From positions 483,314 through 547,313 of the forward strand of contig JAHDYR010000011.1 in assembly GCA_019828565.1 (NCBI GenBank): a stretch of DNA of 64,000 bases, in the 5' to 3' direction. Each line of letters starts with the position of its first letter. The first letter of the stretch is position 1. The stretch comes from Carpediemonas membranifera BICM (lineage: Eukaryota; Protista; Fornicata). The position numbers and the translations under genes are program-made. Shown here in pieces: positions 7,280 through 56,754 of the stretch. Below the pieces are notes generated by a model. The model ran no database searches and was not told the origin of the DNA. It saw only the letters and a program-made list of their open reading frames with translations.

Positions 7280-9457
7280 TTAGAACGCCTTCTTACAAGC
7301 AGCCTTGACCTCCTTCTCGGTCACAGGGCCCGCGAGATCGTTCACGGCCCGGAACACGGCCGCCTTGAGATCGGCAGGGTGCAGCTTAGGCTCCTCGCCC
7401 TCATTCGCCCTGCAGTCGTTGAATATGGCCTCCATAGTGTCGTAGGTGACGTCGCCGACATCTCTGATTGCGACAGTGAGACTGCCGGCGAGAGGGATGA
7501 TGATGTGCTCGATGATGCCCATCACGGCGTACTCCTCGGGGACGCCGAGGGGACAGAAGAGCTGGTTGACGCGCTTCTTGAGACTGCGCTCGACCTCATC
7601 GAGGTAGATCGCCTGTTGCGGCGTCTTTTTCATCCGGGGAACCTCGCCAGCAGAGGACGCGAATGCACCTAGAAGGGGGTGGGTCATTAGACGCGGTGCT
7701 CTCCTGCCAACAAGCGGGGCGAGTCGAGCAGCTTCCTTGGCCACCATCGCCTTGTCTCCCCCAAAGATGCACACGTCGGTATCCCTGTACAGCACGTCGG
7801 CAATCCGGAGGACCCACGCGACGATGTGGGCAGCCCTCATCGTGTAGGGGTTCATGGGGTCGGGCTTGTCGTCCTCAACGGGCTTGAAGAACTCGAGGTG
7901 CTGGGGCATGAACTTGGCGACGACATCGTGCAGGGTCATCTTACGGGCAATCTCGATAACGAGATGCCAGTATTCGGGATCAGATAGGAACACTGACTCG
8001 GGAACCACAGTCGATTTGGAGTCGATTGAGTCGAGAGCGAGTCTGTAGTACTCAGTTCTGAGGCCAAGCTGGGCGATCTCGGCCTGGGGGGCGACTGGCT
8101 TCTTCTTCTTGTTCTTCTTGGGGATGGGGCCCTCGAGGAACTGGACCCAGTCATTGCAGACGACGGTAACCAGCTCGCCCTCCGTCGTCTTGCCATAAAC
8201 TGCCTTCTTGAGCAGCGAAACGAGCGTAGCCGGTCCGCTGGGAGTCACGGTGTCCAGGAAAGGTGTCTTAGCGGGCCCTGTAGGCGGGGTGGGGATGGGG
8301 GCAGTGCCGTCACGCTTGAAACCTTGTACCTCGGCTGCGAGGTTGCGAGCAAAGTCGTCTTCCCTGAAATGGGTGCGGATCGGCTCGAGGATGACGTTGA
8401 GAGCATCAGCAGTAGCCTGTTTCATCGCCTGCTCAGATATGGCACCCGCCTGGAACGCGGCGCCGACTTCAGCGGCATCAGTGAAGTCCTTGCCGTCGAT
8501 GGCAATGGAGCCAAGTCTGGGAATGATGATAAACTTGATGTAATCAAAGACAGGGTTGAGGGCGAGGTCGTCGGTTGGACAGTAGCCTGCCATGATCTTC
8601 ATGGTCACATCAGCGGCGTTGTCGTCCATAAAGATGGCAGACATCGGGTCAGACTTGGACATCTTCGCCTGGCCCTCCTTCAGCCCGAGGAGCATGTGGT
8701 GGGAGACGATGATAGGCTTCTCCCGCCGCCCGATGGTAGTACAGTAGTCTCGGGCGAGCATGTTCACCTTCCGCTGGTCCTTGCCGAGTTGGCAGATGTC
8801 GGACTTGAGGAAGAAGACATCTGAACACTGCATGGAGGGGTACAGGATCTGGGCGACCGAGAGTTGGTCTGACTCACCCCTGCCCATGATCTGGGAGCAC
8901 CGGACGAGGCGGTTCAGGGTGTTCTGGCGCAAGATGTCGAGGACTCGGCTCCAGTACTCAGGGGCTTGTTCGGCGATGTCCTCTGAGGCCCAGCGGAACT
9001 CGACCTTGTCCTCGGAGAGGTCCATGCCGCATGCCTTCCATACTTCGATGAAGTACTGGCCGCATTTGCGGATCTTCTCAAGGTCGCCGCCGAACTTGTC
9101 GTTCATGAGAGCAAACCAGTCGGCGATCCAGAAGACGAACTTGCAGCCCGCGTCGGTCATCTTGTTGACATTGATAGCCTTCATCAGACCTTGAGCGATG
9201 TGCATGCGTCCGGAGGGCTCAAAACCATCGTAGACAATTGGGACACGGCCTTCAGAGACACCATCCAAGAGGGCGTAGAAGCTGTCCTTCTGAGTGGGCT
9301 TCTGGGCCTCCACGGCGGGAATGATCTCCTCGCCGACGCTAGCGCAAAGCGCAACACGATCAAGAACCTCCTGCTTGAGCTCGGGAGCTTCTGTCACCTT
9401 CTGAGCGTCCTGCTTCGGCTTAGTAGCCGCTGCGTTGTTCTGCTTCGGCTCACTCAT
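7280..9457 (-). CDS. YARS: Tyrosyl-tRNA synthetase, double-length (pseudo-dimer) type
   Basis: YDGFEPSGRMHIAQG, YPSMQCSD, GKDQRKVNMLARDY and KMSKS in the N-half; degenerate second copy in the C-half. First ATG is at 9457. Confidence 0.93.
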   Translation of the reverse strand: MSEPKQNNAAATKPKQDAQKVTEAPELKQEVLDRVALCASVGEEIIPAVEAQKPTQKDSFYALLDGVSEGRVPIVYDGFEPSGRMHIAQGLMKAINVNKMTDAGCKFVFWIADWFALMNDKFGGDLEKIRKCGQYFIEVWKACGMDLSEDKVEFRWASEDIAEQAPEYWSRVLDILRQNTLNRLVRCSQIMGRGESDQLSVAQILYPSMQCSDVFFLKSDICQLGKDQRKVNMLARDYCTTIGRREKPIIVSHHMLLGLKEGQAKMSKSDPMSAIFMDDNAADVTMKIMAGYCPTDDLALNPVFDYIKFIIIPRLGSIAIDGKDFTDAAEVGAAFQAGAISEQAMKQATADALNVILEPIRTHFREDDFARNLAAEVQGFKRDGTAPIPTPPTGPAKTPFLDTVTPSGPATLVSLLKKAVYGKTTEGELVTVVCNDWVQFLEGPIPKKNKKKKPVAPQAEIAQLGLRTEYYRLALDSIDSKSTVVPESVFLSDPEYWHLVIEIARKMTLHDVVAKFMPQHLEFFKPVEDDKPDPMNPYTMRAAHIVAWVLRIADVLYRDTDVCIFGGDKAMVAKEAARLAPLVGRRAPRLMTHPLLGAFASSAGEVPRMKKTPQQAIYLDEVERSLKKRVNQLFCPLGVPEEYAVMGIIEHIIIPLAGSLTVAIRDVGDVTYDTMEAIFNDCRANEGEEPKLHPADLKAAVFRAVNDLAGPVTEKEVKAACKKAF

Positions 9458-9563
9458 TCGTTTCACGACTTGGCAATGACTGCGACCCAATCTCCGGAGA
9501 TTGGGCCCGATCTCGCTGCATCGGTCGTCCACGGACACAACTGCGTCACGAACCCGACCTCGC

Positions 9564-9589
9564 ACACATTGTTCGACCCTTCAATAGCA
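9564..9589 (+). repeat. Dispersed 26-bp motif, copy B
   Basis: ACACATTGTTCGACCCTTCAATAGCA. Confidence 0.85.
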
Positions 9590-9786
9590 CACGCCAATCG
9601 ACTTTAAACTGCGCACTCATGATCCTGTTCGCCCAGCTTCTAAGTCAGGCCACCAATGTCTGGCAGCTGTTCGACACTTCTGGATGCCGGCTGAGCCGTC
9701 GTGCAACTTTGCCGTGGGCCAGCAGTTTAAGGTATCGGCTGTGTGGTATTTAGAGGGTTTATGTGGAGGATTCATGTAAAGGTGAC

Positions 9787-9819
9787 TTAGACTCAACAAT
9801 TCTAATCCTACGCAGCACA
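9787..9819 (+). repeat. 33-bp direct repeat, copy 1
   Basis: TTAGACTCAACAATTCTAATCCTACGCAGCACA; 30/33 identical to 10703-10735. Confidence 0.85.
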
Positions 9820-10179
9820 CTACCTCCACTCACCCACTTCAGCCCTCATCTATACCATCAGGCTTTCGTGCTTTCAGTCGTCGGTCTGCACGAAAAGATG
9901 CGTCGTCCATCGTCTGTGTCGAACGCTGCTGTCTTCTTTCGCGTCTGTGCTCGTCTGTTACGCGCTCATCTGTCGTCCATTGCTGGCGTCTGAAGCTCAT
10001 GTCGTCGTCGTCTTCGTCATCTTCGTCTGTTGTGAGAGACACTAGTGGTGGAAAGCGGTTGTAACTAGTAGTAAAGACGCTTTGTGTTGTATGATGCTGG
10101 TTTCTTGTGTTTTGAGGGATGCTGCCAGCTGATGAACCCTGAAAAGAAATGATCGATGCAGGCAGCTCAATAGACTCCG

Positions 10180-10590
10180 ATGCCTTCCAAGATATACACG
10201 GTGAAGGCTTCCGTTAACAAGGCCATTGGCGAGATTAACGGCGGAGGCGATAACAACGCGCCGCGGCGAGGAAATCTTGAACCCGGCATGCGTTCTTTCA
10301 CGCAGGCTAAGTACACATTCACTTGCCTGCTTGCGTGCGTCTCTGCATCTGCGCACGCGTTGACCCCACCGAGGACGGTCAACCTGTTCGACGAGGAGGT
10401 CCTCGCGCAGATCGTCAGCATTGCTCAGCAAAAGGTGTCGAAGGCAAAGGCAGCGGATCGGTGCAGGTGGATTGGCGACCTGGCGATGTGGAGGGATTCT
10501 TTGGTGCACCTTCGATGCAACTTCAGATCAGATAGAGCAATCTCCTTTCCACTACGACTCCCAGAGAGGTGCTCTTCCTCGCTATCATAA
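10180..10590 (+). pseudogene. Unidentified ORF or gene relic inside the direct-repeat-bounded segment
   Basis: 136-aa ORF with protein-like composition but no recognisable motif. Confidence 0.25.
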
Positions 10591-10702
10591 ACTTGCTAAG
10601 TTGAGCAAACACGCGCTGCAGCGCGCGTGATATGCTGCGCACGATTGATAGAGTATGATGAACCACACTGCGATCCTGATGCTGCTCAGATCACTGTGTG
10701 TT

Positions 10703-10735
10703 TTGGACTCAACAATTCTAATCCTGCGCGGCACA
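10703..10735 (+). repeat. 33-bp direct repeat, copy 2 (ends 19 nt before the neuroguidin ATG)
   Basis: TTGGACTCAACAATTCTAATCCTGCGCGGCACA. Confidence 0.85.
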
Positions 10736-49720: not shown

Positions 49721-50083
49721 GCTTGTGGCGTCACCTCGCCGTGTCGCTTTGGAAGATCGAACGAGATGGATGCGATCCAGCACAAATCTCACGGATCCGA
49801 TGCAATCCCAGGCTATTTCCAGCCAACAGTAGGGAAGGATCCGGGGTTGAGACAGCAATAACTGGCGGGCAGACCTTGTCCTCGGACTGGTGGAGTCAGA
49901 CGAGTCACAGCCAGACTAGAGTGAACTGGGCGAAAGACCGCACCGACCTTTTAACTCATTGAGTGGAAGGGCTCCAGGATGACACTTATGGGCCTGAAGA
50001 ACTGCTGGCAGACCCGAGGAATGGGCTAGTCGGCTTGACACCATCCTTGAAAGTCTATCTCACGCAGTGTTGCGCATTAAAGA

Positions 50084-50109
50084 ACACATTGTTCGACCCT
50101 TCAATTGCA
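50084..50109 (+). repeat. Dispersed 26-bp motif, copy C
   Basis: ACACATTGTTCGACCCTTCAATTGCA; 25/26 identical to copy B, and shares upstream TGTTGCGCA with copy A. Confidence 0.85.
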
Positions 50110-50469
50110 CAACCGGAGGTGTGATAAAACGTTACCTGTATGTCATCACGCAAGTTAACCACCCGACCAACAGGCAACCTGCCACATTTGAACACAATAA
50201 CAAACGTAGCACGTATGCCGACACGGCAGACACACACTCAGGTCCAAAGCCTGTACGACACGGCCGTGTCCCTGGGGGGAGGTTAGAAGGTGCGGTCACC
50301 CCGGCAGAGGCATTCTAGACCCGGCAGTAGCCCTCAGCAAGGGCGACGGCAATGTCAAACTTGAGCCGGTGGATGTGCCAGCGACTCGGGGACTGCGGGT
50401 CGTAGCTTGACGTGGAGCCCGCCCAAGGTGCGTTAACCTGCGATTTTTTGGAGGAATTTCCGACCACCC

Positions 50470-52040: not shown

Positions 52041-53471
52041 CTAGTACCATTGCGACCTGGGCCTTGGTCTGAAGCCCTCAGGCTTCTGCCGCGTCGCCCG
52101 CTCCTGGGCGAGGTCGGACTGTGCCTGCGCCATCCGAGCGCGCGCCTCATCGACGATCGCCTGCTGCTTAGCCAGCAACGCGTTCCTCTCACGCTCGTAT
52201 GCGTCAGCCTCCTCCTGCTCGCGGCGTCTAGCAGCCTCAACGGTCGCCTGCCTGTCCATGATCTGGCCGGTGAGGTCGCGCTTGGACTTCTCCTGGGCCT
52301 CCTTGCGCTTGTCCACCTCGGCCTTCATCTCGGTCTCGTATTCCGCAAGCTCGGCCTCAACCTCCTCAAGCTCCTTCTGCTGGTCGGCCTTGTGCTGCTG
52401 GATGGCGTCTCTCTCGGCCTGCATCATTTGCTTCCAGTGTGCTACTGCCTCCTCCATAAGCTTCTGCCGGGCCTCGGCCTCGCGGTCCCATACGGCCTGC
52501 TGCTTCGCCTGGTTCTTGTCCTGCTCCGCAGCGATCAGGGCGTCGAGCTCGCTCTCGTCCTCGAGGTCGCGCTGCAGCTGTTGCATGAGGTGTTCTCTGT
52601 ACTGTCGGCCCTGGGCATGGGCAGCGGAGAGCTTCGCCTTGGCCTCCTCGTCCTCGAGAGCTTCCCGCGCGAGCACGCTCTTGACGAACTCGATGTCGTC
52701 CTGCAGTTCTTTCTTCGCCTCCTGCTTGCGCTGCTCGCGCCAATGCTGGTTGTAGCGGCTCGTATCTCTGGCAATCACGCGCTGCTTGAGCATCTCCCTG
52801 CGGCGGGCGAGGGCGTCTTCGGCCTTCTCGAGCTCCCATATGCGGCCCAGTGCCTTGTCTTCCTCCTGCTTCAAGACGCGCGCCTGCTCCTTCGCATCCT
52901 CGATTTCCGCCAGCTGGATGTCGAGAGCAGCCTTCGTCTCCTTGACGAGCTGCTTCTGGGCCTCCTTGTCGCGGATGTCCCGCTGACGTTCCCTTTCCAA
53001 GTCCTTGTGCAGCAGGGCGTCGTAAAGCTTGTCGAACTCGTGGGACTCGATCTCATCCCGCTCCTTCTCTGCCTCCTGCCGTTGGTGGTCCAATGCGATC
53101 TGGTAGGCAAGGACTCGGGACTCGGCGGCGCGGACCTCGTCGCAGCTGTCGTGCCAGCGACGCTCAAGCTGTTCCTCGGCGTATTCGGCGTCAAGAGCAG
53201 CACGCTGGGCACGAATCTGCTCGGCACGAGCCTTAAGCTGTTCGAAACGCTTGTCGGGCGTCATTCTGCGCCTCTCGAGCTCTTCCTTGTATTCACGGTG
53301 CTCTTCATTGTACATTGCCGCGAGCTGAAGCCTAGCACGCTCAATCTCATCCTGAGAACGCGAGAATTGCCCGTTTCGTTGGCCTGTGGGCGTGTACGGA
53401 CACATGTTGGCGAAAATTTGCTTGACTGGTGTTAAGCTGCGGCCGACGGAATTGAGGCTCAAATTCGGCAT
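52041..53471 (-). CDS. CFAP53: Trichoplein/TPH-domain axonemal coiled-coil protein, CFAP53-like
   Basis: EYKEEL...TPDKRFEQLKARA...LERRWHDSCDEVRAAES, WDREAEARQKLM; E/R/Q/K-rich. Start uncertain. Confidence 0.7.
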   Translation of the reverse strand: MPNLSLNSVGRSLTPVKQIFANMCPYTPTGQRNGQFSRSQDEIERARLQLAAMYNEEHREYKEELERRRMTPDKRFEQLKARAEQIRAQRAALDAEYAEEQLERRWHDSCDEVRAAESRVLAYQIALDHQRQEAEKERDEIESHEFDKLYDALLHKDLERERQRDIRDKEAQKQLVKETKAALDIQLAEIEDAKEQARVLKQEEDKALGRIWELEKAEDALARRREMLKQRVIARDTSRYNQHWREQRKQEAKKELQDDIEFVKSVLAREALEDEEAKAKLSAAHAQGRQYREHLMQQLQRDLEDESELDALIAAEQDKNQAKQQAVWDREAEARQKLMEEAVAHWKQMMQAERDAIQQHKADQQKELEEVEAELAEYETEMKAEVDKRKEAQEKSKRDLTGQIMDRQATVEAARRREQEEADAYERERNALLAKQQAIVDEARARMAQAQSDLAQERATRQKPEGFRPRPRSQWY

Positions 53472-53569
53472 TTGGCCGTTCAAATGTTCATCCCCAGACA
53501 CAGCTCGGATGGACCCTGCCGCAGTTATTGATATGCTCCCCTCTATAGTTGGAAAAGAAGCAGGACCGG

Positions 53570-53756
53570 GTTGACATGGTATTATACTTTTAAAGATAAG
53601 AGGATACTTGGTAACGTGTCAACGAGGGTAGAGCGGCGCCAAATTCTTGCTTCAAACGCTCTTCTGTTGAAGTATCATAGAGTGCACAGTGCAAGCACTG
53701 CGTCTCTCCACTTCAATTAGCTTGCCCGGAGGCAAAGACTAGCGGCTGGTTAGCCG
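53570..53756 (-). ncRNA. Candidate Fanzor omega-RNA scaffold / element right end
   Basis: Five consecutive stems starting just before the stop of the Fanzor-like frame, including C(UCCG)G and G(CUUG)C tetraloops on the minus strand. Confidence 0.55.
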
Positions 53757-54083
53757 TAATTGGTGTATTGGGTTATAGTTGGGAAGACGGGCTGGAGGTC
53801 TTGGATTTCTGAAAGCACTGGCTTGATACTGTGCATCCGTCATGAGGCCGCAATCCAAGATGTTCTGTGCAGCAGTCTTGTCTCTGTGGGAGAGATTGAG
53901 CCAAGTGGTGGTAGTAGGATCGGAATTGAGGCGTTGCTGTCTGTACCACGGAGCACCTTGACAATTCGGGTTGTGGCATCGCATCGTGCGCCTCGTGTAG
54001 CGAGTTCTACGGAACCTCGCGCGGCAGAAGGGGCAGACGAGTGAGATACTGCAGTCTTCCGATACTGATTTATAATATATAAT
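53739..54083 (-). mobile_element. 5'-truncated TnpB/Fanzor-like nuclease fragment (RuvC-II Glu, C4 Zn finger, RuvC-III)
   Basis: 114-codon open frame: KSVSEDCSISLVCPFC...MRCHNPNC...HRDKTAAQNILDCG...RNPRP. Confidence 0.72.
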
Positions 54084-54282
54084 TTATATAAACTGCACAA
54101 TGACTCAGGGGTGCAGGGCAAATATGACCCAACCAATTGGTCACCACAGCTGCCTCCTCTCCCAGTGGGGCAACCCTGCACTCGGGGTGTCTGGGATAGG
54201 TGGGAAGCTAGTTGCTTGGCGAGAGGACTGGAGAAGCAAGCTGAGACCTCTCGCAGTTTATGCAAATATCATCGCCGCAGAA

Positions 54283-56754
54283 ATGTCAACAGAAAGGCAA
54301 CAGCGAGCCCTAGAACGGTACCGTGCAATGCAGGACCAATGGGCACGCTACGCCCATCGGATATCTTCGAGGCTAGATCGCCCGATGAATGATAACATGC
54401 TTGCACGCTCTAGAGACTACAGGAGGGTTGTAGAGGTCAAACAAATGCTGGATGCCGCACGCCCACCAGCAAGTCACAGCGAAGATTGGCAAATGTCGCT
54501 CCGTGGCGATGTTGAGAGCGAGAGGTTCGTCCCCATCGGCTCCGTGTTCAGCGGGCTCTTCGTGAAGGTGCAGGGGCCTAGAACTCAGCCTATCATCAGA
54601 ACAGGCGTCCCAGGGTCGGGTGCTGGTGCAATGGCGCAGGTGGCCTCGAAGATTGCGGCGGCCCCGAAGGCGCGTCAGAGGCTTCAGTACCTCCCCGCCC
54701 AGCTGGCACCAATAGAGGCCGACATCGATGGCCTCATTATCGAGGGCCAACCTCTACCTGTTCGGGACGCGATCCCCTTCCCCGACGACGGCGAAGAGAC
54801 CGCTCAGCTTGTCCTCGACGAGCCTGAGGGCGACGCTCCCGCTGGATCCGTCAAGCGCAAGGAGACGCCCGCTAGATCTGTCAGAATCGAGGAGGACAAC
54901 GAGCCCCAGCCCTCACTGAACATTGCCACCCCTAAGCCCGCCCTATTGGCGGCAGGCGGCATCGCAGTGACAGAGATGGCCATTGAGAACACGGGAAACA
55001 CCGTGGTCGAGGTCAAGTGGACCCCGAAACCCCGGGCAACGTCGCTCCTGGGCCTCCGCACGAAGACGGCCCCCGCGATGACGATCACGCCTGAACACAA
55101 GACCCTCATCCCCGGAGAGGTCGCGATGTTCCGTATCATGGGCGAGATCCCCGCCGCCGGCATCTTCTGGTCCGTTTTTGAGCTGACCACGCTGCCCGCC
55201 ATCCCCTCTGCCCCCAAGACGATCGAGTGCACGGTTGGGTCCTTCCCTGAATACGACCCGTTCGTGGAGGACGACGACCTTGAGGCTTTCCACGACGAGC
55301 TGGCCGAGCGGGCTGTTCGTACAAGCATCCAGGACATCGTTGACGGCATGGCGGACCGGGCGTCGACCGTGCTGACCGAGGAGGAGAGAAGGGACCCTGA
55401 CCAGGAGCTGTGGGACGCCGTGAACAAGCAGTACGGCCTCTATTACTCTCCTACCGTCTTCCGCATGCTAGAAGCGCTATTCAGCTCAGCCAGACTGCTC
55501 ATTGACGAGTCTGCGGGAGTGGTCGAGCCCGAGGATCCCAAGTGGGACGCTGACCTCGAGGCCCTCGTAGAGCTCATCCAGTCGCTCCCGGACGAGGGCG
55601 AGGATGGCCCCACACCCCGGCAGACCCACCTTTCCCTGCTGTCCGACGCCCTCCAGCTTGCCGCCACGCCGTCCGACTGTGTTGTCCGGGCGGACTACTC
55701 CAAGTACCTTTCCGTAAGGGACAGACGCCCACTCCGCACAGTTCACCGCGAGGCCGCTGTCCGCGCCCTGCTGGTTGAGCTGCTCGGCACGGCCGTCGGA
55801 CCCGGGTCCGAGTCTGTCCTGCCGACCATGGTCCACACAGAGCCGGTCCCGGCACTCCCCACTGGATCGCCTGAGGGTGTGGTTGGCGGGGTGGTGGAGG
55901 GTGAGGCGGACGCGGAGAACGCGCTGGATGAGCCCGAGAAGGAGGACAGCCTGGTCGGAGACGACGGGGCCGAGCCTGAGGCCGAAGAGACCCCCAAGGA
56001 GACCGAGCCGCAAGGCGACTTCTTCGAAACTCTCGTAGCCCAGGCAACAGAGTTCTACCAGACCCAGGTGGCTGCCGTCACGGAGCACCAGGAGGCACTC
56101 AAGACCGCCCACCACACGTGGGACAAGGCACGCAAGAAACAGGAGCGGAAGCTGGCCGAGAAGAAGCGGATGGCCGCGGAGATCGGGGAGACCTACCTCG
56201 AGACGCCAGAGGACGGCCCCCCGCCGACCCCGGCCCTGCCCCCCAAGCCGGACATGACCGTGACCCTGCCCGTACCCGCCCAGCCGCGCCACGTCCCAGA
56301 GTTCAGCAACCTGGTGAACGGGATGGGTACGATTTATTTCCCACGGCCACCGGAGCCTGAGCCCGAGCCGGAGCCCGAGGACACGACCGAGTCTGCCCCG
56401 TCTGAGGCCCACACGCCGCGCACTCCCCGCACCCAGCGGAGTGCTCGGGCGAAGAAGGAAGAGCCCGCCACGCCGCCCAAGAAGTCGGCCCGGCCCAACG
56501 CCAAGGACAAGAAGACAGAACAGGCCCCGTCGCCCGAGCCGACACCCGAGCCCGAGCCAGAGGTTGACCCTTGGGAGCCGGCGCCTGAGCCCAACAAGGA
56601 CGCTATCGTGTTGACGATGGCCAGGCCACTCATCAGCGGGCTTGTCGAGCGTGCTGTTGGCATCATGGAGGGGGCGGACGGGTTCTGGGCGGTGCTTGAC
56701 AGGGTCCATGCAAGTCTCCGGCAGGTTGATATGGGTGAGTGCGAGGAGGAGTAA
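54283..56754 (+). CDS. MYCBPAP: MYCBP-associated protein-like (MYCBPAP, flagellar)
   Basis: RALERY...W......ISSRLDR....MLARSRDYR, WQMSLR, VPIGSVFSGLF, Ig-like IENTGNTVV..W...LIPGE..F...GIF; acidic, Pro-rich tail. Confidence 0.65.
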   Translation: MSTERQQRALERYRAMQDQWARYAHRISSRLDRPMNDNMLARSRDYRRVVEVKQMLDAARPPASHSEDWQMSLRGDVESERFVPIGSVFSGLFVKVQGPRTQPIIRTGVPGSGAGAMAQVASKIAAAPKARQRLQYLPAQLAPIEADIDGLIIEGQPLPVRDAIPFPDDGEETAQLVLDEPEGDAPAGSVKRKETPARSVRIEEDNEPQPSLNIATPKPALLAAGGIAVTEMAIENTGNTVVEVKWTPKPRATSLLGLRTKTAPAMTITPEHKTLIPGEVAMFRIMGEIPAAGIFWSVFELTTLPAIPSAPKTIECTVGSFPEYDPFVEDDDLEAFHDELAERAVRTSIQDIVDGMADRASTVLTEEERRDPDQELWDAVNKQYGLYYSPTVFRMLEALFSSARLLIDESAGVVEPEDPKWDADLEALVELIQSLPDEGEDGPTPRQTHLSLLSDALQLAATPSDCVVRADYSKYLSVRDRRPLRTVHREAAVRALLVELLGTAVGPGSESVLPTMVHTEPVPALPTGSPEGVVGGVVEGEADAENALDEPEKEDSLVGDDGAEPEAEETPKETEPQGDFFETLVAQATEFYQTQVAAVTEHQEALKTAHHTWDKARKKQERKLAEKKRMAAEIGETYLETPEDGPPPTPALPPKPDMTVTLPVPAQPRHVPEFSNLVNGMGTIYFPRPPEPEPEPEPEDTTESAPSEAHTPRTPRTQRSARAKKEEPATPPKKSARPNAKDKKTEQAPSPEPTPEPEPEVDPWEPAPEPNKDAIVLTMARPLISGLVERAVGIMEGADGFWAVLDRVHASLRQVDMGECEEE

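Follow-up and report, generated by a model that had tools for sequence, protein, structure and literature searches.

A dead copy of an apparently undescribed Fanzor1 element with LTR-like ends between two host genes of Carpediemonas membranifera

The window analysed here is a stretch of 64,000 nucleotides from Carpediemonas membranifera. Within it, a CFAP53-like gene and a MYCBPAP-like gene diverge from each other, and a relic of a mobile element lies between them. The relic spans 53668-54238 on the minus strand and represents 571 bp of a parent element of about 2.49 kb (family A). It is internally deleted and dead; its ends were mapped by BLAST. Its outer limit is perhaps 54250 rather than 54238. 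The features of the locus are as follows.

52041-53408, minus strand: CFAP53-like host gene with a TPH domain (Pfam PF13868, E 2e-13); an RNA-like contig ends at 53417
53663-53667, minus strand: right flank, the expected place of the 5-bp TSD; by flank comparison, the left side of the window copy has no match to it
53668-54238, minus strand: whole internally deleted family-A copy, ends set by BLAST against other copies
53668-53697, minus strand: 30-bp terminal direct repeat; by sequence comparison, full-length elements have a second copy ~35 bp inside the left end
53668-53715, minus strand: right terminal module of 48 bp with TG...CA at both its ends, in the 5'-LTR position on the opposite strand; this precise end is common to 37 distinct copies
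53716-54045, minus strand: retained 3' part of the Fanzor1 gene, by homology to long copies, with the zinc finger (CPFC 54035-54024; CHNPNC 53978-53961) and the RuvC-III Asp (53882-53880)
54046-54194, minus strand: 149-bp filler that defines a subfamily (16 places), from comparison with other copies
54068-54092, minus strand: hypervariable A/T run inside the filler, pointing at the retained 3' end (copy comparison)
54098-54088, minus strand: promoter-like GTGCAGTTTAT inside the filler (motif match)
54195-54238, minus strand: 44-bp remnant of the parent's 5' non-coding region (parent position ~146-189, by BLAST)
54243-54250, minus strand: probable 8-bp scrap of a type-II left end (GAGGTCTC), judged by comparison with the left-end types
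54251-54261, plus strand: host target motif TCGCAGTTTAT, 32 nt before the MYCBPAP-like ATG, with the best possible score in the insertion-site matrix
54283-56754, plus strand: MYCBPAP-like host gene with its likely true start at 54283 (Pfam PF14646, E 4e-18; RNA-like contig from 54278)

Two other family-A copies match the relic over its full length at 97-98% identity (BLAST). The window copy retains the last 378 bp of the parent (53668-54045), and the left direct repeat and terminal module, the purine tract and the TSD are absent from it. The scrap at 54243-54250 matches one left-end type. We therefore infer that the left end was lost by microhomology deletions after insertion. The window copy makes no nuclease and, because its left end is missing, cannot move again. 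The filler has no source that we could find in the genomic sequence compared, and its A/T run differs in every copy. In one copy (L037:1923-2043), a 121-bp piece of another low-copy repeat sits in this run; it was considered as a route to a helper element and was rejected, because it belongs to a separate repeat present in 12 places.

A minus-strand frame of 114 codons (54083-53742) crosses the relic, and its translation is as given by an earlier, sequence-only reading of this DNA. The first 13 codons are derived from the filler. A 1-nt deletion at 53769, which may be a homopolymer assembly error, puts the last ~9 codons out of frame. The relic is larger than the 53739-54083 that this reading gave. 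That reading took the frame for the 3' end of a Fanzor-bearing element that had lost REC, WED and RuvC-I. Longer copies of the element confirm this, and they show that RuvC-II is gone too. The CPFC (54035-54024), the CxxxxC (53978-53961) and the HRD Asp (53882-53880) are homologous to the zinc finger and RuvC-III of a full-length Fanzor-type protein in many copies, as had been proposed. The Glu at 54057-54059, proposed as the RuvC-II catalytic residue, is encoded by the filler, and homology with the long copies stops at 54045. The parent reads NEFRTSLVC, with its Glu 6 residues before the CxxC, whereas the Glu of the window copy is 7 residues before it, in unrelated filler. The deletion junction falls directly after the catalytic Glu; thus RuvC-II was lost together with REC, WED and RuvC-I. 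Both the RuvC-I Asp and the RuvC-II Glu are deleted from the window copy.

We searched the C. membranifera genome itself (24.24 Mb, 69 contigs) for related copies. The 114-aa frame has at least 150 protein matches. Among those listed, ~50 are 80-100% identical (family A), and ~100 at ~45% identity belong to families B, C and more. The protein homologues on record are all 'hypothetical proteins' of C. membranifera. At the DNA level, 40 scored copies match the relic at 91-100%; nearly all end at 53668 and most stop at 54045. The terminal 25-mer occurs at 123 genomic sites, compared with 0 for a reversed control. These numbers greatly exceed chance. Further copies, which the sequence-only reading had expected elsewhere in the genome, are thus present at both the protein and the DNA level, longer ones among them. 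The search also yielded termini and TSDs, and no transposase was present in the loci read.

Family A comprises ~50 near-identical copies of an element of ~2.5 kb. The proteins of families A, B and C are only ~45-55% identical to one another and all three catalytic residues are kept, which, judged from the sequences, implies long selection for activity. Within family A, pN/pS is 0.74 when variants are counted against the per-codon majority, which is near neutral, and 0.91 for shared changes. None of the scored family-A copies has an uninterrupted frame, although some of the breaks may stem from assembly errors in repeats. In family B, a stop-free frame of 643 codons is located, by coordinates only, at contig C18:237813-239555 (minus strand), and protein P0005 (J8273_6085) is a chimeric A/B Fanzor. 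A and B elements lie side by side or nested at three loci (L049, L075 and L077), so the same target sites are reused. In the left-truncated copies L040 and L032, short stretches templated from the right flank of the same copy stand at the left junctions, as is typical of alternative end joining. A small share of the stretch (0.08-0.09) was found in sequencing runs X6 and X7 from two other organisms, which may carry related elements.

The window itself holds further members of these families, identified by sequence.

9743-10732, plus strand: second Fanzor element, family B, an N-terminal coding piece (starting at 10180) joined to the 3' end
464-507, 9545-9592 and 50066-50111: family-C terminal modules of 43-46 bp

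The family-B element has TG...CA ends, 30-bp direct repeats (9790-9819 and 10703-10732) and a clean 5-bp TSD, and a promoter motif on its left side points at it. The family-C module at 464-507 is a solo module with a 5-bp TSD; this module and the one at 9545-9592 lie in a fixed register downstream of the promoter motif. A 20-bp perfect palindrome was observed at 9486-9505, near a family-C module and just upstream of a gene that ends at 9457 on the minus strand.

What does the intact gene encode? Long family-A copies encode a protein of ~660 aa (~661 codons) whose frame starts with MTSIYTVK and carries TDG, GFDPG, NEFRTSLVCPFC and HRDKTAAQNI. Fanzors are recognized by a DPG and a Glu six residues before the finger, and Fanzor1 by a TDG (PMC10711439). 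The RuvC-I DPG is present as GFDPG in long copies of families A, B and C, the WED TDG lies ~56 residues before it, and a Glu stands six residues before the first CxxC (EFRTSLVCPFC). DPG and this Glu are deleted from the window copy, and the C4 zinc finger followed by RD (RuvC-III) is found in long copies and window copy alike.

A profile search of the 114-aa frame had been suggested by the sequence-only reading. Pfam and NCBIfam recognize neither the frame nor the long proteins (best PF07282, E 0.13), whereas fold and extended-profile searches of the family recover Fanzor1; the silence of the two libraries was thus rejected as a refutation of Fanzor identity. An AlphaFold model of a natural copy (P0001) has a middling pLDDT of 59. 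Foldseek with this model returned SpuFz first (E 3e-5), followed by PpFz, Cas12f, Fanzor2 and TnpB. VIA-align placed the model in the RuvC-Cas12 fold without separating subtypes, as CasPhi, Fanzor2 and others tie at Z 10-11. A Carpediemonas-only profile is marginal against solved Fanzors (E 0.09); it finds environmental proteins of 550-870 aa (E 2e-8 to 1e-3, HH probability 97%), two of which sit on giant-virus-like contigs. When the profile was extended with these relatives, Fanzor1 structures were matched at E 1e-27 to 2e-20, Fanzor2 at 1e-9 and TnpB at 1e-3. Scans of JGI metagenomes and IMG/VR found no relatives.

The protein thus resembles the Fanzor1 nucleases SpuFz1 (8GKH/9CEU), PpFz1 (9CF0) and GtFz1 (9CER) in its ~660 aa, the TDG of WED, the DPG of RuvC-I, the Glu six residues before the zinc finger, the C4 finger and the RD, and they are its best fold and profile matches. 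In contrast, structural alignments with them are only 11-14% identical, ~28 residues separate the last finger Cys from the RD, and a basic insertion precedes RuvC-I. Its closest relatives in sequence match only weakly, at E 2e-8 or worse, and two of them are on giant-virus-like contigs. Our literature searches found no paper on a Carpediemonas Fanzor element and none linking Fanzor with Carpediemonas or metamonads. An uncharacterized Fanzor lineage had been suspected; profile, fold, motifs and literature now point to a very divergent, apparently undescribed Fanzor1, which is probably RNA-guided. Within that literature search, it is the first Fanzor1 case found in Metamonada.

The carrier of this gene has unusual ends. 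Full family-A copies measure ~2.47-2.49 kb, start with TGA(A/G)GT and finish with ACTTCA. A 5-bp TSD flanks 13 of the 19 copies that have both ends; among the exceptions, several have one flank in common with another copy, as if recombined. The final 30 bp are repeated ~35 bp inside the left end and are followed there by a pyrimidine run. On the strand opposite to Fanzor, this run is a purine tract directly before the repeat. The tract next to the 3' repeat is clear in families A and C, weaker in B, and lost in the window copy. Families B and C share the plan of direct repeat, purine tract and TSD, and their solo modules, including copies in the window, are flanked by 5-bp TSDs. Fanzor is the only gene of family A. 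TG...CA ends, a 5-bp TSD, a purine tract, solo repeats and promoter tethering are marks of LTR-retrotransposon integrases.

The carrier can be compared with two groups of elements. SPu-1 (with TIRs and a TA TSD) and the SfAV element are non-autonomous DNA transposons that carry only Fanzor1 (PMC3627910, PMC10711439). Like them, the Carpediemonas element has Fanzor as its sole gene, short TIR-like ends and a TSD, and its right end is expected to form omega-RNA. Unlike them, it has a variable 5-bp TSD, TG...CA ends, a terminal direct repeat, a purine tract, solo modules, fixed-register promoter targeting and an exchangeable left tip. With TRIMs and other non-autonomous LTR retrotransposons it shares tiny TG...CA-bounded terminal repeats, a purine tract before the 3' repeat, a 5-bp TSD, solo repeats and the lack of its own RT and IN. 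Promoter-targeting Ty3 and Tf1 likewise keep a constant spacing to a promoter element when they insert into a gene-dense genome (for Ty3, 10.1101/2021.07.27.453949). In contrast to TRIMs, Ty3 and Tf1, the repeats are identical over only 30 bp, a tRNA primer site is lacking, the nuclease cargo is antisense, and Pol II-type protein-coding promoters are targeted at near-nucleotide precision. We do not file the element as a TRIM, because it lacks two defining features, identical repeats and a tRNA primer site.

Insertion sites share a signal. Among distinct family-A left flanks, TGC occupies positions -15 to -13 in 17 of 18, and A stands at -19 in every one of the 18. On the host strand, the signal reads YGCAGNWT, 11 nt from the element, and it lies 20-55 nt before host start codons. 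In most family-A copies, a host ATG is found 39-67 nt from the element end and the element is head-to-head with the host gene. Family A inserts upstream of the motif, whereas families B and C insert downstream, at mirror distances. The siting of the relic between divergent CFAP53-like and MYCBPAP-like genes had been noted before; the location is as described, and it is not incidental, reflecting the target preference of the family.

The motif precedes 8 of 31 genes in the window, compared with 4% of coding windows and with 2.5 +/- 1.4 after shuffling; it is also on the antisense strand of 7 of the 31 upstream regions, so it may lack a fixed orientation to genes. Besides the copy before the MYCBPAP-like gene, the same motif lies before the CFAP53-like gene at 53442-53432. 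For both genes, 21-23 nt separate the A of the motif from the end of the gene's RNA-like contig. Because it is enriched before genes and keeps this distance to two RNA contig ends, YGCAGNWT looks like a core-promoter element of Carpediemonas. Runs X1 and X2 were taken as RNA, since both flanking genes are covered and 53446-53633 is not. The contig start at 54278 makes ATG 54283 the likely start of the MYCBPAP-like gene; the element supplies two spurious upstream ATGs to the listed 884-aa ORF.

It could be supposed that Fanzor picks the insertion site itself, with the motif as its TAM and with copies made by cut-and-copy repair. A motif at a constant position upstream of each insertion does look like a TAM, and the host repairs breaks only by HR and alternative end joining (PMC8516963). 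We consider this very improbable. Between the motif and the junction lie 6 nt and the TSD, families B and C occupy the opposite side of the motif, and it is enriched before ordinary genes at the frequencies given above. Furthermore, an integrase is required to make clean 5-bp TSDs at new sites, and the copies decay neutrally.

How, then, does the element move? The genome holds Ty3/gypsy machinery: at least 150 rve and at least 150 RT_RNaseH loci, with RNase H upstream of integrase and ORFs up to ~1550 aa. The most telling evidence comes from the left end. Its outer 30-37 nt, the U5 position of a 3' LTR, are of two types that are unlinked to the body (permutation p 0.9). Three sister pairs, L062/L063 (0.31%), L069/L074 (0.37%) and L065/L068 (0.50%), have different left-tip types, each with its own clean TSD. 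The simplest explanation is an exchange of tips before integration, as in intermolecular strand transfer, and this favours reverse transcription over cut-and-paste. Gene conversion is less simple, because it would have to stop exactly at the TSD. At four loci (C13:711528, C13:716979, C19:244532 and C54:404582), identified by coordinates and short patterns, the left tip is followed by TT-TGG, like an LTR/primer-site junction. The two tips on contig C13, 5.45 kb apart, do not form a simple 5'/3' LTR pair, as both are followed by the same bases; among the matches listed, no RT or integrase lies between them.

We favour a non-autonomous micro-LTR, TRIM-like shell that is moved in trans by resident Ty3/gypsy machinery, with a probability of about 0.6. 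The evidence comes from the Fanzor elements themselves and, for the putative autonomous gypsy partner, from search coordinates. The TRIM-like shell would carry Fanzor in antisense. Ty3/gypsy proteins would reverse transcribe its RNA and integrate the product in trans, strand transfer from another RNA would provide the U5-like tip of the 3' end, and a factor bound to the core-promoter motif would tether the integrase. Several observations speak against such a shell. The two terminal modules of family A share only 30 bp, and their 3' halves differ, with unlike remainders of 18 bp and 30-37 bp; standard LTR replication does not yield such ends. After the 5' repeat of family A there is no tRNA primer site (no TGG start), only a 4-8-bp palindrome. 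Copy L037 has neither direct repeat nor purine tract, yet has a clean TSD. In family B, an 18-bp perfect palindrome right after the CA of the 5' module takes the place of the primer site, and this counts in favour of the shell.

Some of these observations lend weight to cut-and-paste movement, in which a non-autonomous DNA transposon, bounded by imperfect ~15-bp TIRs and 5-bp TSDs, depends on an integrase-type DDE transposase (Ginger/TDD, IS481/IS3-like, or gypsy integrase acting on DNA). The repeat and purine tract would be leftovers, and Fanzor would restore excised donors, as proposed for other Fanzor transposons. An imperfect TIR does link the two ends of family A, the ends are precise and many internal-deletion derivatives exist; the unequal modules and the tract-less L037 fit as well, and all described Fanzor carriers are DNA transposons (PMC13565253). 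However, the ends of such a transposon should travel with the body, yet tips swap between sister copies that keep their own TSDs. In addition, the repeat and purine tract recur on the anti-Fanzor strand in three diverged families, and no locus read has a linked transposase. We consider cut-and-paste movement the less likely of the two.

With regard to the role of Fanzor, the right end of an element gives omega-RNA and the flank gives the guide in this protein family (PMC10711439). In the window copy, the host flank beyond 53663-53667 would be the guide. The right module folds as a predicted terminal hairpin, and the whole 3' region is no more stable than shuffles (z -1.0). RNA-like contigs cover the family-wide 3' end and enter the flanks of several other copies; they carry no strand, start or end, and no distinct omega-RNA emerges from them. 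A tenfold RNA enrichment over the last 250 nt, seen in summed depth, was rejected, since the rise per place is ~2-fold, as in DNA-like runs. No obvious TAM is found next to the guide, because the TSD is variable and an 11-nt gap separates the element from the motif.

The filler subfamily, including the window copy, might be a selected guide-RNA-only cassette, in which the 3' end is transcribed from a captured promoter and serves as omega-RNA for Fanzor made in trans. In the filler, a promoter-like motif and an A/T run closely precede the retained 378 nt, and the subfamily has spread to 16 places. Nevertheless, many kinds of deletion derivative have spread equally well, the retained part folds no better than shuffles, and no RNA contig covers the flank of the window copy (53446-53633), hence no guide read-through is seen. 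We regard such a cassette as unlikely.

An intact Fanzor would bind right-end omega-RNA, use the host flank as guide and cut empty alleles. C. membranifera lacks NHEJ and uses alternative end joining (PMC8516963), and it is haploid with signs of sex. The benefit of Fanzor in a host lacking NHEJ would be homing by HR, most likely through cutting of empty alleles in the zygote, since the host is haploid with signs of sex. In the recent burst of family A, Fanzor appears to have been a passenger.

According to a 2026 review (PMC13565253), Fanzor is not known from any retrotransposon; the carriers described are DNA transposons. Within our literature search, LTR-like ends are a carrier type without documented precedent for Fanzors. 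The corrected anatomy of the window copy, the filler subfamily, the mirror-image targeting of A versus B and C, and the unlinked left tips are new. Taken as a whole, we give an even chance to the following: a Fanzor1 lineage of at least three families and well over 100 copies spreads via an RNA intermediate on an LTR-derived shell; a Ty3/gypsy integrase inserts it at a fixed distance from a Pol II core-promoter motif; its inverted LTR tips are the omega-RNA stem; and each insertion programs a guide against a host promoter region. If true, this runs counter to the idea that Fanzor is kept by excising DNA transposons alone. Of this system, the window copy is no more than a dead marker. With the system, the range of Fanzor1 reaches Metamonada. 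It also adds a very divergent nuclease candidate and points to both a core-promoter motif and an integrase that targets promoters with nucleotide precision, in a host without NHEJ and ORC. A Fanzor that is present in high copy number on an LTR-like vehicle, in three diverged families with conserved catalytic residues, would be a test case for donor restoration versus allelic homing as the reason why Fanzor is kept.
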